This document shows, piece after piece, positions 1,251 through 20,600 of a stretch of 64,000 bases of DNA. Source of the DNA: Camelus dromedarius (lineage: Eukaryota). Positions within the stretch are counted from its first letter, which is position 1. Every line of letters begins with the position of its first letter. Location of the stretch: assembly GCF_036321535.1 (NCBI RefSeq), contig NC_087444.1, forward strand, positions 37,200,001 through 37,264,000, written 5' to 3'. The notes under the pieces were generated by a model that saw only the letters and a list, made by a program, of their open reading frames with translations, had not been told where the DNA came from and searched no databases. Made by a program: the position numbers and the translations under genes.

Positions 1251-1948
1251 ACTGGCCTGGAGACCCCTACAAACTTCATCTTTGAGTATCAAGATTCCTT
1301 GATGCTCTCATCCAGCAAGCATTCAGATGCCCCTCCTGGGGATGAAATCCAAAGGACTAAGTCAGAGGACAAAAGCTGTGGACATGAAGGGGTTCACTGC
1401 ACTAGTAGCTTCAGTGGTAAAAACAAGAAGCTGCCCAAGTGCTGAAATGAAGGAACATTATGATGAGACCCTTTTTTTTGTGGACAGTTTTGCAGTCATT
1501 AAATCAGTTACTGTGAAGCTGGGCAGAGTGAGAATGATAGAACAGGATGCTCAGAAGGAAAGTGCAATGCTGATGCTCTGTGTGGGGAGTTCAGTGCGCT
1601 GGAAGGCACTTGGGCTGTGACTTGCTGTCTGAAACCTGAGAGTCTTTGATGGTTAGTCTCTCAGGCAGAGTCACGCTAACCAGTCTCATAGAGCCTGATG
1701 TATCAACTAGGAACCAAAGCAGGAGTATGCCGTGGATCGACACTGCCTAGAAAGTGCAAAGATTTGGTTCTCAGGAAGGAAACATTTGCTTTCAGAAAAT
1801 TAAGCTGGGTAACCTTGAGCAAGTCCCTTAAACCTCTCAAACTCAGCTTTCTCACCTATCAAACGGAAGTGCTCAGCTTACAGGCTGTGGGAATGGTACT
1901 GGGGCAGGAGAGCACTGTCTAGGGCAGGGCATTGAAGGGCACACTCAC

Positions 1949-4900
1949 CTTGGGGATGAGCCAGCCAAACTTGTGATCGTTGACACCCAGGAGGAAGGGC
2001 ACAGAGTGGAGCTGCCTCTCCCTCAGGAGCTCATTGGGGGTCTTGGGAAAGAAGGTGCTGTCAATGGTGTAGAAAGCTGTACCCTTTTGCAGGAGAAAGC
2101 AAGTCAGAGGGCCTCCCAGTCAGGATCAAGCCTCAAAATATGGGACCCCAAAGGTCACTTGGCTGCATGTCTGAGTGGCTAAACCTTGAGGAAAGGGAGG
2201 GGATGAGGTCACTAGGGCGAGAGGACCAGTGAGGGTCGGGAGACCAGACAAGCGATGCTTCTGAGCAGTCCTCTTCCTTAGAAGACAGGCCTGCCCTTGA
2301 GGCTGGGGCAGCCCTGCCTTCATGGCGCCGGGCCTAGTTGGGCCCTCAGCCACTACCTCTCAGAGGTGGCTACCTTAAGCCTCACCCCGGACTGCAAATT
2401 GCTCTCTGCTCCCACAGGAACTGGACAGGACCCCTTCTGTGCCACTGCCCACCACTGTCCCCTAAGAGGTGGGTTTACCAACTTCTCTGCAAGCATCAGT
2501 TCCTTGCTTGACTTCTGCCGAAGGCACTGCAACATCTCAGCCAAGGAGTTAGAGCCACAGGCCAAGGAGCTGGCAAAGCTCTGGGGACAGACAAGAGTGT
2601 CTTGCCTCTCTCTCTCATCCATCATTGCCCACCTTCCAGCCCCCTGCCTCCCATAGAGAGGAGATGCATCCATAGGAGGGCTGGGGTGACGATGTTAGAG
2701 ATGGGACCTTGACACTAGCCAGACACCTGCCACCAACCCAGAGAAGCCTTCCTTGCTCACCAGCCTGGGTGGTCCCCAAGCAGCCTTTGTGTCCCCCATT
2801 ACATCATACTGTCATTATCTGTATGTGTGTTTAGGTCTCCTTTACCCTTCTGAGGAAAGTGTTATTACCAAGTTAACTCTATTCTCAGAGCCAGTGGGAT
2901 CAGTAAAGATTTGTGGAGTGAATAAGGAAATGAGATATAGTTTAGATGGGGAGGGATTCCAGCATGGGCTACTCTGGTAGGGAGGGAATGGGGGTCAGTG
3001 CTGAGGCTGGAAGCAGATCAGGGAGTCAGTAGGAAGCGAGGCTGAAGGGATAATTTCTTGGATCATGTCATACCTGGTGGCACTGATGGTTTTCTCTGAG
3101 TTCTCACAGGTTGTGTGCTTCCTTCATCCTAGTTGGTCCCTCTCTGCCAACAAGAAGCTCTCTACTGGTAAGACCTCCACTCTGGGACTCCAGGGCAAAC
3201 ACAGGGTGGGATGTGGCAGGTACAAATGGGGTAAGAGAGTGAAAGAAATGCAGACCTGAGCCAGGGGCCAGGGGTCAGAACTCAGAAATCCTGGTAAGGT
3301 GATGATTCCACTCTGTGCTATAGCTCTGTGGAACAGCCCTGCAGCCAGTGGGGACAGGACCTGGGTGCAATGTAGAGGACAGATGGCCGTCAGAAGAGGG
3401 CAGAAGATCTGGGAGGTCTGGGGCCACAGGAGACACCATCACTAGCCCCTTTGGTGACTCACCAGGGCAGAGACGATGCAGGCACCAGCAGATCCACCAA
3501 AGATGGTGACAGAGTTGAAGTCACCTCCAAAGGGGGTGATGTTCCCCTGCACCCAGCGCAGAGCAGCCACTACATCAAGGAAGCCCCAGTTGCCAGGGGC
3601 GTGCTTGTCCCCAGTGCTGGGGGTAGAGTGGGGCAGTGGTTAGGGTGGGCTGGCTCCCCTGACAAACTTTCTTCAGCCTTTGCAGGTTTGCTTTGAGCCA
3701 GCCACTAGGATGCCAGACTTTCTCCTGCTCCCCAAGTCTGGCCTGGCTATGAACCACACTTGGTATTCATATACCCAGCACGTGGAATGGGAGGGCCTGG
3801 CTAGGCCAACTGCCAGCTCTGGCTCTTAAGTGCTTGCTAAAGCTCTTTGTTCCTTGACCCCCATGCCCTGCTGGCCCCAGACCAGAAGCCAACACTTTCT
3901 TCCCAAAGGACAAAGTCCACTGAAAACTGCTGGCTTTGGTTGAGCCCCTCCCTCAGGGTGGAGCCTGGGGAAGCACCCTTCTCTGCCTCAGATATCCTGC
4001 TGGCCCAGGAGATCTTCCTTCAAGCTCCAGACCCTCACTCTAGATCCCCAGCTCCTCTCACGAGCTGGCCTCTCCTCAGTGCAGTCAATATCCTCTGCCA
4101 GGACTGCCACCTCACCTGAAGAAGCCAGGGATCCCCAGCCGGTATTGGACTGTGACCACTACCATATCCCCGTAGGCGGCCAGGGCTGAGCCATCGTGGG
4201 AAGTGGCGGCGCCAACCACGAAAGAGCCCCCATGGATCCATGCCATGACCTGCAGAGATGGCCACGGGTCAGTGACACCCCCCAGCCTATCAGGGCAGGT
4301 CATTCATGGGACCCCCGGAGTGGTTTCAGAGCAGGGATGGCAAGGTGGCAGGCCAGGCGGAGTGGGCTGGATGGACAGGGCCCTCTGGGCTGCACACCGG
4401 CCTCCCAGCCCCTGAGGTGGCCTCAGCTGGGCTGTAGATGTTGAGGATCAGGCAGTCCTCCGAAATCGGAAAGAGCTGGTGTTTTCCGTCCAGCGTAAAT
4501 CGGCTGTTGTTCATTCTCTCCACATCCTGTAGGCACCTGTGGCTGGGGAGGAGCCCGAGGGCCAATAGGTCAGCCCCACAAACCCCAGCAGCTGGACTCC
4601 CACTACTTGCTAGCTTGCCCGCCTCCACCGGGGCTCCTTACATTGCAGGGACCGTGCTGGCATCCCGCACACCCTCCCAGGACGGCGCTGGGCGTGGGGC
4701 AGAGAACTGGCTGGGCCCCAAGGGTGGCTGGGTGAACGGGATGCCCAGGAAGACATTCATGAGCCGGTCTGTGCCCTTCACACCCACCTGCCGGCTCCGC
4801 ACGCTGCCAAGGGTGGTGTCCACTTCAGGCTGAGTGATCCCTGGTCCTGAGGGCAGGACAGAGGGGCTGTGGGTGAGTGGCAGCTTCCACGAGAGGATGG

Positions 4901-9217: not shown

Positions 9218-9686
9218 GCTATGCAAATGAAGGAAAAACTACTGGTTCCTCACTGGGTGTGTGTGGGCACCTCTGGCAGACCCCCACCTGCACTCAAGCC
9301 CACACCCCAACCCCTGATGCAGGAAGCTACAGTTCTGTGTGCTTCTCCTTGGCCTCCATTAGCTCCTGCATCTTCTCAGGTAGGGTCTTTGTCCAGAACT
9401 GGAGCCTGTGGGCCTTCAGGGTCCGGCCCACTACAGGCTGCATGTCCAGCTGCAGGTATTGCTCTCCTCCTGGTCAAACAGGGGCCAGTGGGGCAGACCC
9501 TCGCTGTTGGGGTTCCTGTAGACATGCCCACCCATGGAGCAGTGTGAGAGTCACTGTGAGCCCTACCAGGCCCAGACCCGAACATCCTGACTGAGGCCAG
9601 GCAAGGCAGCCAAACAGGGCTTAGGGAATGAAACAGGGAGGTTTCCAGAAGTAGGAAAGAATCTACCTCCCACCAGAGCATCAGCT

Positions 9687-9700: not shown

Positions 9701-10419
9701 AGCAGCCTGTGTTCTTTCCTGACAGAGGGAGGCTCTGTCAGTAATAGCACTGTCACCTCCCCTCCAGATGACCCAGGGATGGCATAAGTGTCCAGCATCC
9801 ATAACGCCCCTCTTTGTCCAAGAGGGTCCTGGAGCTGGGGAGAGGGCTGCCACTCAATTAAAGACATCTATGCTAATGAGGTCACCACAGACAAGGGAGT
9901 CCTGATTGGTTCAAGATACACCCCTCAACTGTGGAGGTTAAAGTAAGGATGCAACATCTCACCCATTTCGAGCAAAGTTGGCCCAGTACTTCATCATCTT
10001 CCTGCTCAGCAGCAGCTCCTCCTCAGTCATTTTGACTACAGAGCAGTAGGACAAAGGTCCTGGTCAGGGTAGCTCCAGGGCAGCATGTGGGTCATTTCGC
10101 AAACCACTCTCACCATCCCAGGTGTAGCTTTCCCCAGCCCCTCCCTGCCAGCCTAGACCTGGCTCTCTGCCTGCTCCCCAGGCCCTCTCCTCGCCCAAAC
10201 CCCATATATTCATCTCAGGCTCTGGCTGACCTGACACTAGGCTCAGGCCTGACCCAGAGGGCTCCCTTCTTCCTTCTGATACTGGAAGGGCATTTAAGAA
10301 ACAAATATGCCTTTGAAACAGCCCCCTCTGCACCCATGCCAGATACCCACAGTCAGGGTGGGGAGAGGTGGAGGGTGCATAGGTCCCTGTTCGAAAAGCC
10401 CTGTACTCCAATGTGAGCT

Positions 10420-11060
10420 CAGTCTTTCTGGCTGTCAGATCTTGGACACTTGATCCCGTCCTGTTTTGGAGCCTCAGTTTCCTCATCTGTACAGTGAGGG
10501 CAATTACCCTCTCTCAGGGACTCAGCCAGTGTACCGACTCACATCCTGGGAATGAGGGGCCTCTGAGGAAACCCGCCCAGGAAGACTCACCATAGCGGCC
10601 CCGGAAAGGGTTTCCAAAGACAAAGAGAACCTCATCTCCATGGTCTGCTTTCACATAGCTTGGCTTGATGTCCTTGGAGAAGCTGGGTTGATGCTGGAAC
10701 TCGTAGAAGTAGACAGGGGCATGGGAACCTGGGGAGGTGGGGTAGACAGGCTATGACGTGGCGGCTTCTCACCTGGAGTTTTCTTGAATTACCCATGGTG
10801 ATGACACAGCTAAATCCAAAGCTGGTTGGGATCTGGACAATGAGGCGAGGGAGCCCCAGGCGGGAGCAAGGGCAGTGGGAAGGGCCTGGGTTTAAACTGT
10901 GGCTTTGGAACTTCCTGGGGTACGGTCTTCGGCAAGTCACTGAAGGTCAGTGAACCTATTTCCTCATCTGTAAAAAGGAATAAATGTCTGTCTCTTAGAC
11001 TAGCCGTGAGGATTTACCAAGATGAAAGATATTAAGTGGCTGGCACCTGAGCCCAATAAA
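10420..11060 (+). mobile_element. Two MIR fragments in CES2 introns (about 10420-10505 and 10890-11060)
   Basis: agcctcagtttcctcatctgtacagtgagg; ggcaagtcactgaa...tttcctcatctgtaaaaagg. Confidence 0.7.
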
Positions 11061-12597
11061 CAGACGTGGGCTGGGACCTGGACACCAGTAGACCTCAGCT
11101 GTTACCTGCAGCTCTGAGTTTCTCCCTTGCCAGTCTTCCCTTAGTTCCAGATGTACTCACGCTGAAAGTTTGCTACTTGGAGTGCAGGGATCACAAAGAG
11201 GTAGTCTTCCATCATCTCATGGAACTGGGTTTGGAGGGTCAGGGGGTCCTCATTGTCTCCTATGTACTCCTCCATCAACAGGTCACCCATCTCAGGAGAC
11301 AACATCTGCCCCAGGTGGATCAGGAAGAGTCAGGTTAGGCAGGCTGGCCGGGGCAGGGAGGCGGCAGGGTCAGGACTGGGGAGATGGATCCTGGGATGGG
11401 ATAAGGAATCAGGGGAAGGGGCCAAGCTCTGCAGGGGTAGTGCATGGACAGGGTATCCGGGAGATGGGCTTCCCGTGCCTTGGAAGAGGAGAGGAACCCC
11501 TCCCATGGGGGCAGGTCCCCAGAAGCCTCACTAACATTGTTGATGCTTTCTGCAAAACAGCCTTCACGGTCTCTCTGTTCATTTCCGTCTGGGTACCATA
11601 TTTGATCAAATCCTGGGTGGTGGGGGGGAGTCTCGAGTTGGAGATGGGATAGCCTGGAGCTATGAAATCCCTAGGCTCCCCCACGAAATGGGATCCCGGC
11701 ACCTAGAGGCTTGGGAATGGGCCTTACCGAGGGGATGATCCAGCCGTACTCATCGTTGTTGACACCAATGATGCTGGGGACAGGTTGAAAGTCAGCAGAG
11801 GCCAGAAGCTCCTGGGGGTGCCTGGGCAGGAAAATCCCATCCACCAGGCCAGGGATGATCTTGAAGGCCTAAGGGGCACTCAAAGTCAAGTTGCAGACAT
11901 TTTCTGATGCCACAGACATCTTCTGCCCCTTCCTTGCTCATTCCAGGATGCTCACACCCACACCAGGAGGTCCGACACCTGCGTTAGCATGGCCTGGCCT
12001 TAACTCCCCATCCAGGGCTGTGAGGACCCCAAGGTGTGGAGATAGAGTAACCTTCCCAGGGAGTATGAGGGGCACTCAGGCTTGCCTGTCCTACACCTAT
12101 GGGCCCCCTTCCTCCACACCCGCACCCATTCAGTCCAACCTTGTTGATGGCCAGAATCTCCTCTTCACTCTTGCCCCGCAGGCAGTTCATCAGGGCCTCT
12201 GAGTCAACCTGGCCACAGGCAGACAGGTTGGCCACTATCTATAAAGAGACCAGGTAGGGGCTAGCTCATCCTTCCAGGTAAGGGAGAGTGGTTATCCTGA
12301 TGCTCCAGTTGGAGGCAGGTGTACCCCAAATCTCACAGAGTATCATGAGTGGATTCCTACACTTTTGAAATTATTCTGATTTCCCTGATGCTCAGAGGTC
12401 TCAGCTAGAGGGGCCATCCCACCTGCCAAGATGGTCTGGCCCATGATGGGGGCCCCCAGGGTGTCAGTTTTGGGGGCCACAGAATGACTCAGTCTCCGTG
12501 CTGGTAGAGGTCTGTGGATTCTAAGCCTGAAACAATCCCGGGATAGACAGCTATTCCCAAGGTGCTCTGATGACAGGGGAGTCCTTGTCCCCATTTA

Positions 12598-12858
<261 letters not shown>

Positions 12859-15549
12859 CTAGACCCAGTGTAGTGCAGCCACTTGATCCAGGTAGCCCCA
12901 GTTGCCAGTTGCATGTATGTCTCCAGTGCTGCGAGGGGGCAGGGATGGCGGTCATGGAACGGTCCTGGCTTTGTCAGCCCACACTGCCCAGTCCAGCCCC
13001 AGTCTCACCTGAAGAAGCCCAGCACACCCAGGCGGTACTGGGTAACGACCACTATGACGTCCTCGAAGGCTGCCAGTGCAGACCCATCATACATGGAAGC
13101 CATGCCCATCACAAGCAAGCCACCATGGATCCACACCATCACCTGGAGAATCCAAGGCACAGATACCACGTTGCTCCCACCCAGCCCAAACCCCACCAGG
13201 GATGCTGCTTAGACTAACCACCACCTTGGCTCTGTCTGTCTAACAATGTGGACAAAACTCGATATATTCATGCCCCGGGGCTGAAAGTGACCCAAGTTCC
13301 ATCAGGAAAGCTGGGCCTCCCACACTTTGGGGTCTGTCCCATGTACCAAGGCCTGGCTCCATTTCTCCCAGAACACTCTCTGAGGTGGAAAGAAAAGGGG
13401 TGTCTCCCTGATCACCCCACATGCATATCAATTAAGGAAAGTGTTCTCTATTCTCATTGGCCCGACAGATAATCCCTGGCTGGGGTCTCTGGCCACCTCA
13501 ACGGGCAGCCCTCAGTCACCTGAGTGGGTCTCCTGTGCATGAGTTGGTTAGGTGAGTCCCGGGTCCCTCCCAGGGCCACCGTTTCTGATCTCTGGGAGCA
13601 GCCAGGGTTCTGCAACCCTGTGCCCAGGGGTCAGCCACCCATGCTGGGTAAGAAGGACTCTCTTAGATCTAATAGTAAGAAGCTTCTTAATAGGGTCCAC
13701 ACTGCAGTGGAGCCCAGGCTGATCCTGTCCTTTTTCAATTTTCTTGCAGAAAAAATGTCCTCCCACCCCTTAGCCAGCTGTGACCTGGCACTCACAGGCA
13801 GGTTGGAGCCCTCGTGGGTATGGGCAGGTGTGAAGATGTTGAGGTACAGGCAGTCTTCAGACATGGAGGTGGAAGGCAGGGTCATATTCAATACTTTCAC
13901 AAACATTGCATTCATGCTAGCCGTATCCTGCAGACACCTGGTGGCAGTGGCAGGCAGTCAGTGCTGGAGCCGTGTCATGGCCATAAACAGATCCCACCTA
14001 CCCTTGGTCCCACTTCCCTCGATACCCTGCTCGCACATGGTCCTTTCCTAAAGCCCCTTTGCACCAAGTAAGTTACAGGCCACAGGTTCTGGGGAAGCTG
14101 TCTTCTGGAGAGGCGTCAAGCTTATGAAGTCCTTGGATACCAGTCCTCCTGAGGCTGAGAAATCCTGACTCTTGGGGGTCTCTATGAGAACCATTGGTTG
14201 CATGTGTTGACACTCACCACCATATCACTGTACTCAGATAGGCCTGGAACAGGGAAGTAGCCCATATACATGTGCTGCCAGAATGAATGGATGTTAATTT
14301 CTCACAAGAAGGGGAGTGGGATGTCCCTTGTTCCAAGTCAGACTCTCAAGGAACCTCATCACTCCCATATAGTTTCCAGCTGCAAGAATATATACATGCC
14401 CCTTGGTCAATGGCACCCAGCCCTGTCAGCTGGTGCAGTGACTGTGCAGAGTGGGGGTTCCCCACTCCTCAGGGATCTACTGTATCTGCTGCTACAAGGT
14501 TCACACCTCTCCCAGAGACACCTCCTCTTGGCATAACTAGAACGTGGGGAGATGTGTATCTCTGCTCATCCCTTCAGCATGTGGAGCTAATGCTCTTTGA
14601 GTGTTAAGCCCTCAGCCTGGGAGTTACTCCACCCTTTCAAGGCTCAGCATGCTCATCAGAAAAATGCATGTGGGGATCCATCAAACTCAGAGGGAAAACT
14701 GGCTGTGGGCATTTAGATAAAATGACAATGGTGGCCTGGCCCAGAGCTCTGAGTACCTTCTATCTCCAGGGCCTAGAGTTCCCTGCACTCTCTGCTTACA
14801 TGGCCGGGTGGGAGGTCCCATCCTTTACACCACTCCAAGATTCTGGGGGCTCAGGGGGCACAAATTGCAGAGGCCCCAGAGGTGGCTTGGCAAAGGGAAT
14901 TCCCAGGAAGGTGTGGACCCTCACATCAGTGTTCTTCATGTGGACGAGACTCCCTCGCACTTGCCCTGTGTGTGTCATCCGGACAGGGCTGGTAGAGTCC
15001 TGGCCTGTGCGCAGAGAGATGGATATCAGGGTTAGGTCTCCCCCATCAGCTGCCCTCCCCAACTGTTGATATGGCTACCTCCTTCCTGTCCTCAGCTCAG
15101 TTCAAGGGACACAGGTGTACCAACATTTGCTTTGCAGATTTCCTTCCTGTATCTCTGCCCTGACCCTTGCCACTGCCTTCACTGAAAGGTGCCAGCCTTT
15201 CCCACCACACTCAGTGAGGCTCCCTGGGGCTTTGCCCCATGGTTTAGCGCCAGGAGCTTCAAACAAACAGCCACATGAGCTTGATGGGAGAGTGTCCTTT
15301 CCACTCACCGTGTGCCAGGTCCTAGGAGGCAGTAGGAGAACTGTGGGAACAGGACAGACAAGGTTCCTGCCCTTAAGGATCTCACACTCTAGGTGGAAAG
15401 AAATGACAGAGAGAGAGTATCCTCCAGAAAGTGATGTTATGAAGAGAACTACAAGGTGAAGTGCAGGTGAGTCTAGAATGTGAACAGTACAGCCCGCCCT
15501 GCTGTGGGGATCAGGGAGGCCTGAAGAGGCTGCACGTCACCTCACAGAG

Positions 15550-17210: not shown

Positions 17211-18999
17211 CCTCTCCTCCTCAGATGGGGAGCCCTGTGGTGCTGTGTGGTCTTGGGCAGCCCTGACCCTCTCTGTGCCTCAGGGTGCAGGGAGTTATCC
17301 AGTCAGGCTCCCAATTCCCCCGGTGTTATCTCCACTGGCTCCCACCTTGCGATGCCTTTCCTCCTGCAGGCTCAGGTTCTTCCTCTGCAGAATTTGGCAG
17401 GCCTGAGCCTGGTTTCATAATAAAAAGTTTAACAAAACAAAACAAAACAAAACAAAAAAACAGGCTCAGGGAGCTATACTATCCCACACCTATCAGATCA
17501 ATGTGGATCAACATTCTTGATGCCACCTGGTGTAGGTGAAGCCAGAGTCAGCAGCTACAGGCCCCAAAGAGGGCAACTGAGCAATATCTTTCCAACTCAA
17601 AAGGCCCACCCTTCTCCCCAGTATCATATTGTCTACACAGCTCCTTATGGGATGTGATGTCTGTTCCTGTACTTCACTGTTGCCAGTGGCCTCTAATGCT
17701 TGATGTTTGTTATAGCAAAGGACAAAACCTGCTAAAATGTCCCTGATCAGAAGCTGGGTACATACAGGATGCTTTCTCTTTGAAGAGAAGCCCTTCTATT
17801 AAACAGTATGAAGAAGTTCTACCATGTGCAGGTGTGGTGAGGTCACCCCCTGTGTCAGGAAGTGGAAAAGCTAGGCACCAGAAAGGGAGGGAATTTCTGA
17901 TCATTTAGGTGAAAACCAAGGCTGCATGTACACATCTGTTCCTGGTAAACTCCTGGTCAGTGTGTGGAAGGTCCCAGAGAACTTGATGGTCCCTGTTGGA
18001 TAACACAGAACTGGATGGGACAGGAGAGGGTGAGAGCCATCACCTGTACTTATCAATTCTTTCTTTCTGAAAGTGGGTCCAATCCAACATAGCAACATTT
18101 CTAAAAGGAGGTGTCAGCGAGGCCTAGTAGATCGTGGTGCGGAAGGTTCTGGTGAACTCCTGGAGCCTGATCAGTGATGGGTAAGGGGGAAGCCCTGTGG
18201 AGTTGGCCACAGGGGATGGATTAGTGTGGACAGGCAGATTCCACTGGGAAGTGAGAGGATAGTCAGGCTGCACAGGCAGAGCCCGTTTGGATAAGAGGAT
18301 CACGCCCTTCCAAAGGGGGTACAGGAGGTGCAGACACACCCAGGCACAGTCCCCACATAGCCTAAGCTACCTATAAGGGCTGACATAAAGAACGATCACC
18401 TTTGCCCTGGAGGCCAAGGTATGCCCTCCCCCAGGGTTGGCACATAGGGTGAAGAGAAGGAGGTGCTAATCTGATAGGCTTTAGGATGGGGAGGTGGGGA
18501 GCTGGGAGGTGTGCTCCTATAGCCAGAGCCAGTAACTTGCCTGGGGTTCCTGTGGAAGGGGGCTCAGTGGGTGTCAGGACGCCCCTTTAGCCAAGGATGC
18601 AACACTCAGAGCTAAACGGCAGCAGAAAGATACTATTATTTCTGTTATTACCCAAGGGCAGCGCCAGCTCCACCACAAACACTAAGAAAGAAAGTCCCAA
18701 ATCCGCCCTTCCCTCCCAAAGACCACCAGGTGCTGCCAGAGTCCCTAGGGGCCGCTGGGCCCTCAGTGTACTGTGACCTGGGACAGCCCCTGCTCTCCAT
18801 GCGCCTCAGGGGGCGCACCCTCATTGGTCACCGTGTGTCCGGTCTGGCACACGGTTCAGGGGCTATAGCTCTCCAATGGTTCCCACCTCCTCGACGCCTG
18901 TCCTCCCGCAGCCTCGGGTCCTGACTCTGCAGAATTTGGTAAGTGCTATCCCGGTCTCTGTTGCCTTATGCGGGACCCTCACCCTGGCCCGAAACGAGA

Positions 19000-20600
19000 A
19001 GCAGGAACCTGAAGGTCACGGCGCTCAGCCACAAGCGAAGTCTGTCCAGTGGCATGGTGGGCTCACAGTCTTCTCTTTTTTGCGCTACCGGGAAGCAAGC
19101 TGCGTTTCACCGAGAGGCTCCTCGGGGGCCGGTCCAGCAGTCGATTAGTGAGTGCCCCACCAGACCCGGAGTTTGGACTGGGCAGACTGGGCAGGGAGTA
19201 GGCGGGGAAAGGTGAGTTTGGCAGGAGAGTGGGACTGAGCAGGCAAAGGCCAGTGGCAGTCACGGTCGCTTGCCCCCTGCCCAAGCCCACTTAGGCCTTC
19301 TCCGAAGGGGCCTTGTGGCTTCTGCAGCCCCTCCGCAGTATCAAGAGCCCTCTCCTCAAACCTGCGTTCACTATCCTTACAGTCAAAGGCCCGATAAGGG
19401 TGTTGGGGGGCGAGAGAGAGCAATCAGCTGTGATTGGGAAAACCAGGAGAGCTTCCCTGAGGTGCATGATCAGGATTCACAAAGACGGAGAAACAGAAAC
19501 GACCTTCGACCTTCGGTCAGAGAGAAGGGAACCGCCTGAGTAAAGGCAGGGAAGTGTGACTGCCCATCATTCCAAAAACTCCTCCTTGCTTTCAGGGATT
19601 AATTTCCTGGGTCTGCCTTCATCGCCTTACTGTTCCTGGTCCGAGGGTCTTTGCGGGCCCCCTCCCTACTAGGCAATGCCTCGTCTTTTGAAATGCACAA
19701 CGGATTGTGGCACTCATCTTAAGGACACCCTCAGCCCCATCCCGTGTCTTTCCCTCTTCCCACCTTCCGCCAAAATCGAGTTCACGTTCACTTATTCATT
19801 TGACAAAAACTGAAAGAATGACTGCTGGTCCGCGCGCTAGGGGCCAGGAGAGCACTCCTGGACCAAAGTTGCAGCAGGGGCTGCAGGTGCGTCACCGTGA
19901 AGTCGCGAAACTCAGTGAGCCGTGCCAGGAGAGGCAACTCTGGGCAAGGGAGCGCCCGCCCAGCCTAAGGGGCAGAATTCCCGGGGGAAGTTATGCCTGA
20001 AGGAAGATACGCCAGGCTCAATCTCAGACGGGTCTTCAGTGTCCCAGCCTTGGCCTCCGCCGTCCAGCACGCTACGGGCTCACACACGGGGTCTCTTCTC
20101 CGTGCCTTTGCTGGAGTGCTCCGCATTTTCCCAGGTCTGCGCAGAAAATGAGCATAGGTCACTCTTCCACTCAAACCTCAGGCGGAGTACCGGCAGCGCA
20201 GCGTGTCCCTCGCCTTAACCCGTCGCCACGCCACGCCCCTCCTCGTTCCCCGGAAGTGCGCAGGCAGGAGCGGAAGTACACGCCTACAGTAGCCCGCCGC
20301 GGTTCCGCAATGGTGGGCGGCAGTGGGATGGGGGGCGGCCTCTTGGAGAACGCTAACCCCCTCATCTACGAGCGCTCTGGGGAGCGGCCAGTGACCGCGG
20401 GCGAGGAGGACGAGCAGGTTCCAGACAGCATCGACGCCCGCGAGATCTTCGATATCCGTCGCAGCGGGGCGCGGGCGGGTTCGCGGGGGCCTGGGAGGGG
20501 GGATGAAGTGATTCCAGTAGTCGGTGGAGCAGTATCAGGGCCAGGCTTTCCCGGCGGAGGGTTGTGAGTGGACAGAGGCGCAGAGTCCCCTTTCCTTCAC
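19000..20600. promoter_or_regulatory. Head-to-head CES2/CIAO2B promoter region, CpG-rich
   Basis: ATGs at 19055 (-) and 20310 (+) are 1.25 kb apart. CpG-dense from about 19830 to 20570. ETS-type CCGGAAGT at about 20250 and CGGAAGT at about 20271. Confidence 0.8.

Follow-up and report, generated by a model that had tools for sequence, protein, structure and literature searches.

In humans and rodents, CES2 is a main hydrolase of ester prodrugs and of some pesticides in intestine and liver, and it has lipase activity as well. The usual mammalian gene order around it is CES3-CES2-CIAO2B-RRAD. Losses of detoxifying enzymes in particular lineages are events of a well-known kind, and the closest described case concerns the neighbouring gene of the same cluster and family. 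[quoted passage not shown] According to that paper, camel CES3 carries a premature stop, as does the CES2 copy described below, and in Camelus bactrianus an additional 5-base deletion; it is CES3, not CES2, that is named there among 10 inactivated genes.

Two other published losses offer more distant parallels. GBA3 (PMC7360587) is likewise a hydrolase of plant compounds and xenobiotics in which a truncating variant sits in an otherwise intact gene. In humans it is reported to be a pseudogene of xenobiotic metabolism that is polymorphic, and mammals have lost it repeatedly. GBA3 differs from the CES2 copy studied here in belonging to another enzyme family and in having a documented polymorphism, and it serves below as the model for a null haplotype that still segregates. 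The loss of PON1 in aquatic and semiaquatic mammals (PMC10202596) also removed an esterase acting on lipids and xenobiotics from particular lineages, but it concerns a different gene and an older, convergent loss with multiple lesions.

For direct comparison we used the CES2 (cocaine esterase) genomic loci of bison, rhino, donkey and baiji, whose exon chains were solved exactly. Their exons measure 76, 205, 142, 134, 259, 99, 141, 81, 145, 138, 73 and 187 nt, with the exceptions of exons 3 (136 nt) and 10 (126 nt) in bison and exons 9 (149 nt) and 10 (137 nt) in baiji. The gene in our window (the whole 64-kb stretch of DNA that was analysed) resembles these loci in its 12 exons, its triad residues and its HTEL end, and the encoded protein is 75-80% identical to theirs. 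Unlike the window gene, all of them have CAG at codon 208 and are free of a 2-nt insertion in exon 12.

The window gene was mapped by tblastn with the CES2 proteins of ground squirrel, rhino, bison and baiji, and each boundary was read in the sequence. Twelve exons were rebuilt on the minus strand. Every splice site is canonical (AG acceptors, GT donors), so that all 22 are intact, and the exon sizes differ from the general orthologue pattern only in exons 1 and 12. The exons below come from the tblastn matches and the exon model, the triad codons from the exon model, and the Gln226 entry from a comparison of 34 mammalian CES2 proteins.

18983-19055, minus strand: CES2 exon 1 (73 nt), with the ATG at 19055-19053
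14800-15004, minus strand: CES2 exon 2 (205 nt)
13796-13937, minus strand: CES2 exon 3 (142 nt)
13009-13142, minus strand: CES2 exon 4 (134 nt)
12670-12928, minus strand: CES2 exon 5 (259 nt, AG acceptor and GT donor; from the exon model, and 259 nt in the four orthologues too)
12805-12807, minus strand: Gln226 codon (Glu in most CES2, as GESAG)
12802-12804, minus strand: codon of the nucleophile Ser227, in GQSAGG, intact
12140-12238, minus strand: CES2 exon 6 (99 nt)
11728-11868, minus strand: CES2 exon 7 (141 nt)
11749-11751, minus strand: codon of the triad residue Glu344, intact
11532-11612, minus strand: CES2 exon 8 (81 nt)
11161-11305, minus strand: CES2 exon 9 (145 nt)
10591-10728, minus strand: CES2 exon 10 (138 nt)
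10640-10642, minus strand: codon of the triad residue His456, intact
9963-10035, minus strand: CES2 exon 11 (73 nt)
9327-9515, minus strand: CES2 exon 12, the last, with the original stop after HTEL (189 nt)

The family assignment was supported by matches to Pfam PF00135 (COesterase) in exon 2 (E 1.4e-19) and in the part of exon 5 that follows the stop (E 2.1e-23), and the closest solved structures were those of CES2-type enzymes. In a maximum-likelihood tree of 35 proteins, the translation of the window gene, read through the stop, was sister to ruminants plus cetaceans (96/91), a place compatible with a basal artiodactyl, for instance a camelid, but no proof of one. The neighbourhood likewise pointed to CES2. 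CES3-like exons occupy about 1.9-5.5 kb of the window on the same strand, 3.8 kb downstream of CES2, and the translations upstream on the other strand are, as recognised by eye, what we take to be CIAO2B, head-to-head with CES2, and then RRAD; Pfam gave no match for the short translation pieces of these two genes. Within the 64-kb window, tblastn found no second CES2-like match. The Ser-Glu-His codons are all present, yet codon 208 and exon 12 each break the reading frame, and by its sequence the gene is a CES2 orthologue but not a working member of the family.

The neighbouring CES3-like gene at 1937-2065 (minus strand) encodes, at about 1970-1972, Lys (GVNDHKFGW) where CES2 has its catalytic Glu (GVNNDEYGW). 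No in-frame stop was seen in CES3 exons 1-8, the part inside the window. The early stop in CES3 of Old World camels given in PMC12127551 may lie in exons beyond the left end of the window, unless the animal is not an Old World camel. Two stops in the CES3 tblastn match at 3163-3618 (minus strand) are not lesions, as both fall in a short intron specific to CES3, about 100 nt long, whose initial GTGAGT directly follows ...SALV.

The first break in the CES2 frame was identified from the sequence, the exon model and the orthologue codons.

12859-12861, minus strand: TAG nonsense codon at codon 208

The minus strand reads CAC TGG GTC TAG CAG AAT ATC at this place, with TAG at 12861-12859 as codon 208 of the 12-exon coding sequence, within exon 5. 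The corresponding codon is CAG in all four orthologue loci (GTC CAG CAG AAT ATC in bison, rhino, donkey and baiji), and residue 208 is Gln in 30 and Arg in 4 of the 34 mammalian CES2 proteins. Because of the CAG in four orthologues and the Gln in 30/34 proteins, we read the change as a single non-CpG C-to-T transition that turned an ancestral Gln codon into a stop. A preliminary description of this locus had reported a TAG at codon 208 where orthologues have Gln, had given the position of the Ser227 codon, and had placed the stop upstream of all three catalytic residues. The sequence and the four orthologue loci agree with the first statement, the exon model puts Ser227 at the same place (12804-12802), and the codons of Ser227, Glu344 and His456 indeed all lie downstream. 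In the scenario that we favour, a germline nonsense mutation from Gln208 to stop would have hit the sole CES2 gene at the CES3-CES2-CIAO2B-RRAD position.

The second break lies in the last exon and emerged from the exon model and the orthologue alignment.

9462-9469, minus strand: 2-nt (AG) insertion, GAGGAGAG against the orthologues' GAGGA(C/G)

The extra AG falls within GAGGAG (9469-9462), where the orthologues read CAGGAGGA(C/G)CAATAC, and exon 12 accordingly measures 189 nt, versus 187 nt in bison, rhino, donkey and baiji. The two additional nucleotides shift the frame, which gives 10 wrong residues and then a stop. The shift removes about 44 C-terminal residues, among them the strand and the helix that are conserved at the terminus, and the retention signal HTEL. 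The insertion is thus, as judged from the reading frame, a second disabling lesion on the same haplotype as the TAG, and any protein from this haplotype would be stripped of its C-terminal residues and of HTEL as well. One nonsense and one frameshift lesion therefore lie in a syntenic copy that has kept its introns, not in a retrocopy or duplicate, and working single-copy orthologues exist in related lineages, as is the case for unitary pseudogenes.

Further candidate lesions did not hold up. Residue 226, directly before the nucleophile, is Gln in the window, and the 34 mammalian CES2 proteins have 25 E, 3 A, 2 Q, 2 T, 1 G and 1 S there; with 9/34 proteins lacking Glu and two carrying Gln, we regard Gln226 as natural variation and not as a third lesion. 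The replacement of Arg205 by His was discarded for a similar reason, His205 being found in 4/34 mammalian CES2. An apparent Pro-to-Gln change arose where a tblastn match ran into an intron, and the spliced model retains Pro. Separately, exon 1 is 73 nt long, versus 76 nt in bison, rhino, donkey and baiji, and lacks one codon; this deletion (in 18983-19055) sits in the hydrophobic core of the signal peptide.

Could a working enzyme still be made from this copy? Such a bypass of the stop might proceed by UAG readthrough, by alternative splicing or from a downstream start. The context UAG-CAR-YYA promotes readthrough in plant viruses, and the UAG followed by CAG in the window (12856-12861, minus strand) corresponds to its first half; the second half is not matched (AAU). 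Splicing offers no better route. Exon 5, at 259 nt, is no multiple of 3, and its skipping shifts the frame. The sole in-frame skip that removes the stop takes out exons 4 and 5 together (393 nt), and Ser227 is deleted with them. A downstream start would forfeit the signal peptide together with the fold's N-terminal third, and after any bypass of the TAG the exon-12 frameshift would still truncate the protein. We therefore regard a working product obtained by bypass as very improbable. Because of the TAG and of the loss of about 44 residues and HTEL through exon 12, we infer that this haplotype cannot give a working enzyme.

These results also bear on what the preliminary description had said about the consequences of the stop. 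Its assertion that skipping of exon 5 brings no in-frame rescue agrees with the confirmed length of 259 nt and with the loss of Ser227 in the exon 4 plus 5 skip. It had further called the message a target of nonsense-mediated decay. The positional part of this claim is correct: the TAG precedes the last exon-exon junction by 866 nt and seven junctions, and the rule asks for more than 50-55 nt. A message with the TAG would thus be a predicted target of nonsense-mediated decay; decay itself is a matter of prediction, and contigs of RNA runs still hold exon 5. The term 'null allele' was apt as far as 'null' is concerned, given two disabling lesions on one haplotype. 'Allele' is a less settled matter. 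Because a second lesion lies in cis and the same 31-mers occur under four organism labels (see below), the evidence points to a young pseudogene common to close relatives rather than to a private nonsense variant. Finally, the role of main intestinal and hepatic ester-drug hydrolase ascribed to the enzyme would, for this animal, be carried over from human.

The age of the inactivation was approached through the traces that neutral decay leaves in a coding sequence. At columns that are invariant in the 34 other mammals, the window CES2 has two unique substitutions, and working orthologues have 0 to 7. The end branch of the window CES2 in the tree is 0.19 long, versus about 0.27-0.31 to ruminants and about 0.21-0.24 to cetaceans from the same node. 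Over 551 codons, a three-taxon decomposition of Nei-Gojobori distances gives a branch dN/dS of 0.31-0.39 for the window CES2 versus 0.45-0.52 for the bison and baiji branches. The few changes at invariant sites, the short branch and the unraised dN/dS rule out a long period of relaxed constraint. The signature of an ancient loss, many lesions together with a raised dN/dS, is absent from this gene, which has two lesions and the dN/dS just given. With the coding sequence itself and plausible rates, the neutral waiting time per disabling mutation comes to 1.8-4.9 My, and the probability of at most one extra lesion in 17 My to 0.001-0.14. Because there are only two lesions and dN/dS has not risen, inactivation was probably recent, of the order of 1-10 My ago. 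An otherwise intact CES2 under the usual constraint would have worked until about that time.

These figures have to be set against the public record of camelid proteins. With rhino CES2 as the query against 5.8 billion proteins, the best 120 matches included no camelid CES2. The matches listed covered dozens of mammals down to 73% identity and even included a 'LOW QUALITY' record, and a full-length camelid CES2, at an expected identity of about 80% to rhino, should have stood high among them. The absence is a weak, indirect hint that full-length CES2 proteins of camelids are missing from public annotation altogether. PMC12127551 states that NCBI annotations exist for three camels and alpaca. 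Other searches yielded no camelid sequence either. The frame that follows the stop matched cetaceans and other mammals in a protein search (best 86%) but no camelid, and none of 10 frames that begin with ATG around the gene had an exact match. When metagenomes were scanned for host DNA, a 45-mer carrying Y at its variable base gave 0 exact matches, and the protein-guided version of the scan gave 79% as its best match, again with no camelid.

The absence of a full-length camelid CES2 from the best matches, despite public camelid annotation, is what one would expect of an old loss common to all camelids that took place before Old World and New World camelids split. The gene itself speaks against such an age. 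It has accumulated only two lesions, whereas the probability of so few after 17 My is low (see above), and neither the dN/dS, nor the short branch, nor the 22/22 intact splice sites betray a long-dead gene. We consider an old loss improbable. The missing camelid protein nevertheless sits uneasily with a young age, unless the tribes lost CES2 independently or shorter models exist.

Evidence from sequencing runs was used to judge whether the stop is an error, a fixed change or a segregating variant. In a k-mer index, 83/83 sampled 31-mers of the 901-nt interval 12400-13300 were found in 14 DNA-type runs, which represent 11 samples and four coded organism labels. Under random sampling, we estimate a probability of about 5% that the stop is covered by none of the sampled words. 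The list contains only the best holders among DNA runs and thus gives no allele frequency; the contigs of runs hide heterozygosity, and the k-mer check covered 12400-13300. All 20 of the sampled exon-5 words (20/20) were also present in RNA-type run(s) of organism A and in several runs of unstated type from organisms A and C. Exon 5 is transcribed, since RNA-type runs hold its words.

An assembly or sequencing error, with C as the true base at 12861, would be the simplest way to explain the TAG away. A substitution error would, however, not recur across independent data sets, and here the 31-mers recur in full in DNA-type runs from 11 samples and the exon-5 words recur in RNA-type runs. An error is accordingly very unlikely.

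A null haplotype that segregates, with the stop, alone or together with the frameshift, being polymorphic and working CES2 alleles persisting in the species, deserves more weight. Apart from its lesions the gene is pristine and normally constrained, and a very recent event would leave it so. Moreover, eleven RNA runs from at least four studies, among them X15, X18, X19 and X27-X33, hold 17/20 exon-5 words (0.85). This pattern fits a single nucleotide difference at some point within 12670-12928, as the three missing words correspond in number to what one SNP leaves behind. Should 12861 be the site of the difference, that population has the stop as a polymorphism or lacks it. The RNA of heterozygotes would be enriched in the intact allele by nonsense-mediated decay, and the list of best-holder DNA runs is silent on frequency. 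GBA3 (PMC7360587) illustrates how such a state can look.

Several points weigh on the other side. Two independent lesions in cis are unlikely to gather under selection, given 1.8-4.9 My per lesion; identical words occur under four organism labels; and the best 120 matches of the rhino search contain no full-length camelid CES2 protein. The two cis disabling hits favour, as an argument, a gene that has long been neutral in the whole population, because they are hard to gather on a haplotype that is still rare. The segregating haplotype is the main rival to the interpretation that we prefer, and on balance we find it unlikely. Because the same words occur under the labels of four closely related organisms and two hits lie in cis, the best reading, to which we assign a probability of roughly 0.6, is that CES2 in the window is a young unitary pseudogene, common to this probable camelid and its nearest relatives and, as we infer, fixed or near fixation in them.

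If the young pseudogene is what it seems, CES2 loss would extend the loss of CES3 published for Old World camels (PMC12127551) to the neighbouring gene. Our literature search did not find a CES2 loss in camelids, and gene-loss catalogues may already list it. A broader proposal would be that this camelid lineage has been permanently deprived of CES2, in addition to having a damaged or missing CES3, and is a natural knockout of the whole CES2/CES3 arm. We put this forward tentatively, as a possibility that is more doubtful than the young pseudogene itself. If it is true, gut and liver would handle ester drugs, toxins and di- and triacylglycerols in an altered way, and the loss would possibly be part of camelid fat and energy metabolism. 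In a camelid without CES2, rules for the dosing of ester drugs that come from other livestock would not transfer, and the animal would be a natural knockout in which to look for compensating enzymes, with CES1 and AADAC as candidates. Fluorescein diacetate is a preferred substrate of AADAC too (PMC9772364).

Two minor observations concern the nucleophile elbow in other sequences. A 134-residue CES2-like fragment from metagenomes (JGI contigs, mammal source) also reads GQSAGG, so that Gln before the nucleophile recurs outside the window. In the baiji, CES2 has GTSEGG instead of GESAGG at this place, its exons 9 and 10 measure 149 and 137 nt, against the usual 145 and 138 nt, and, together with tarsier, it has the highest number of unique changes (7) at columns that are otherwise invariant. 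This may reflect erosion of the enzyme in the baiji.
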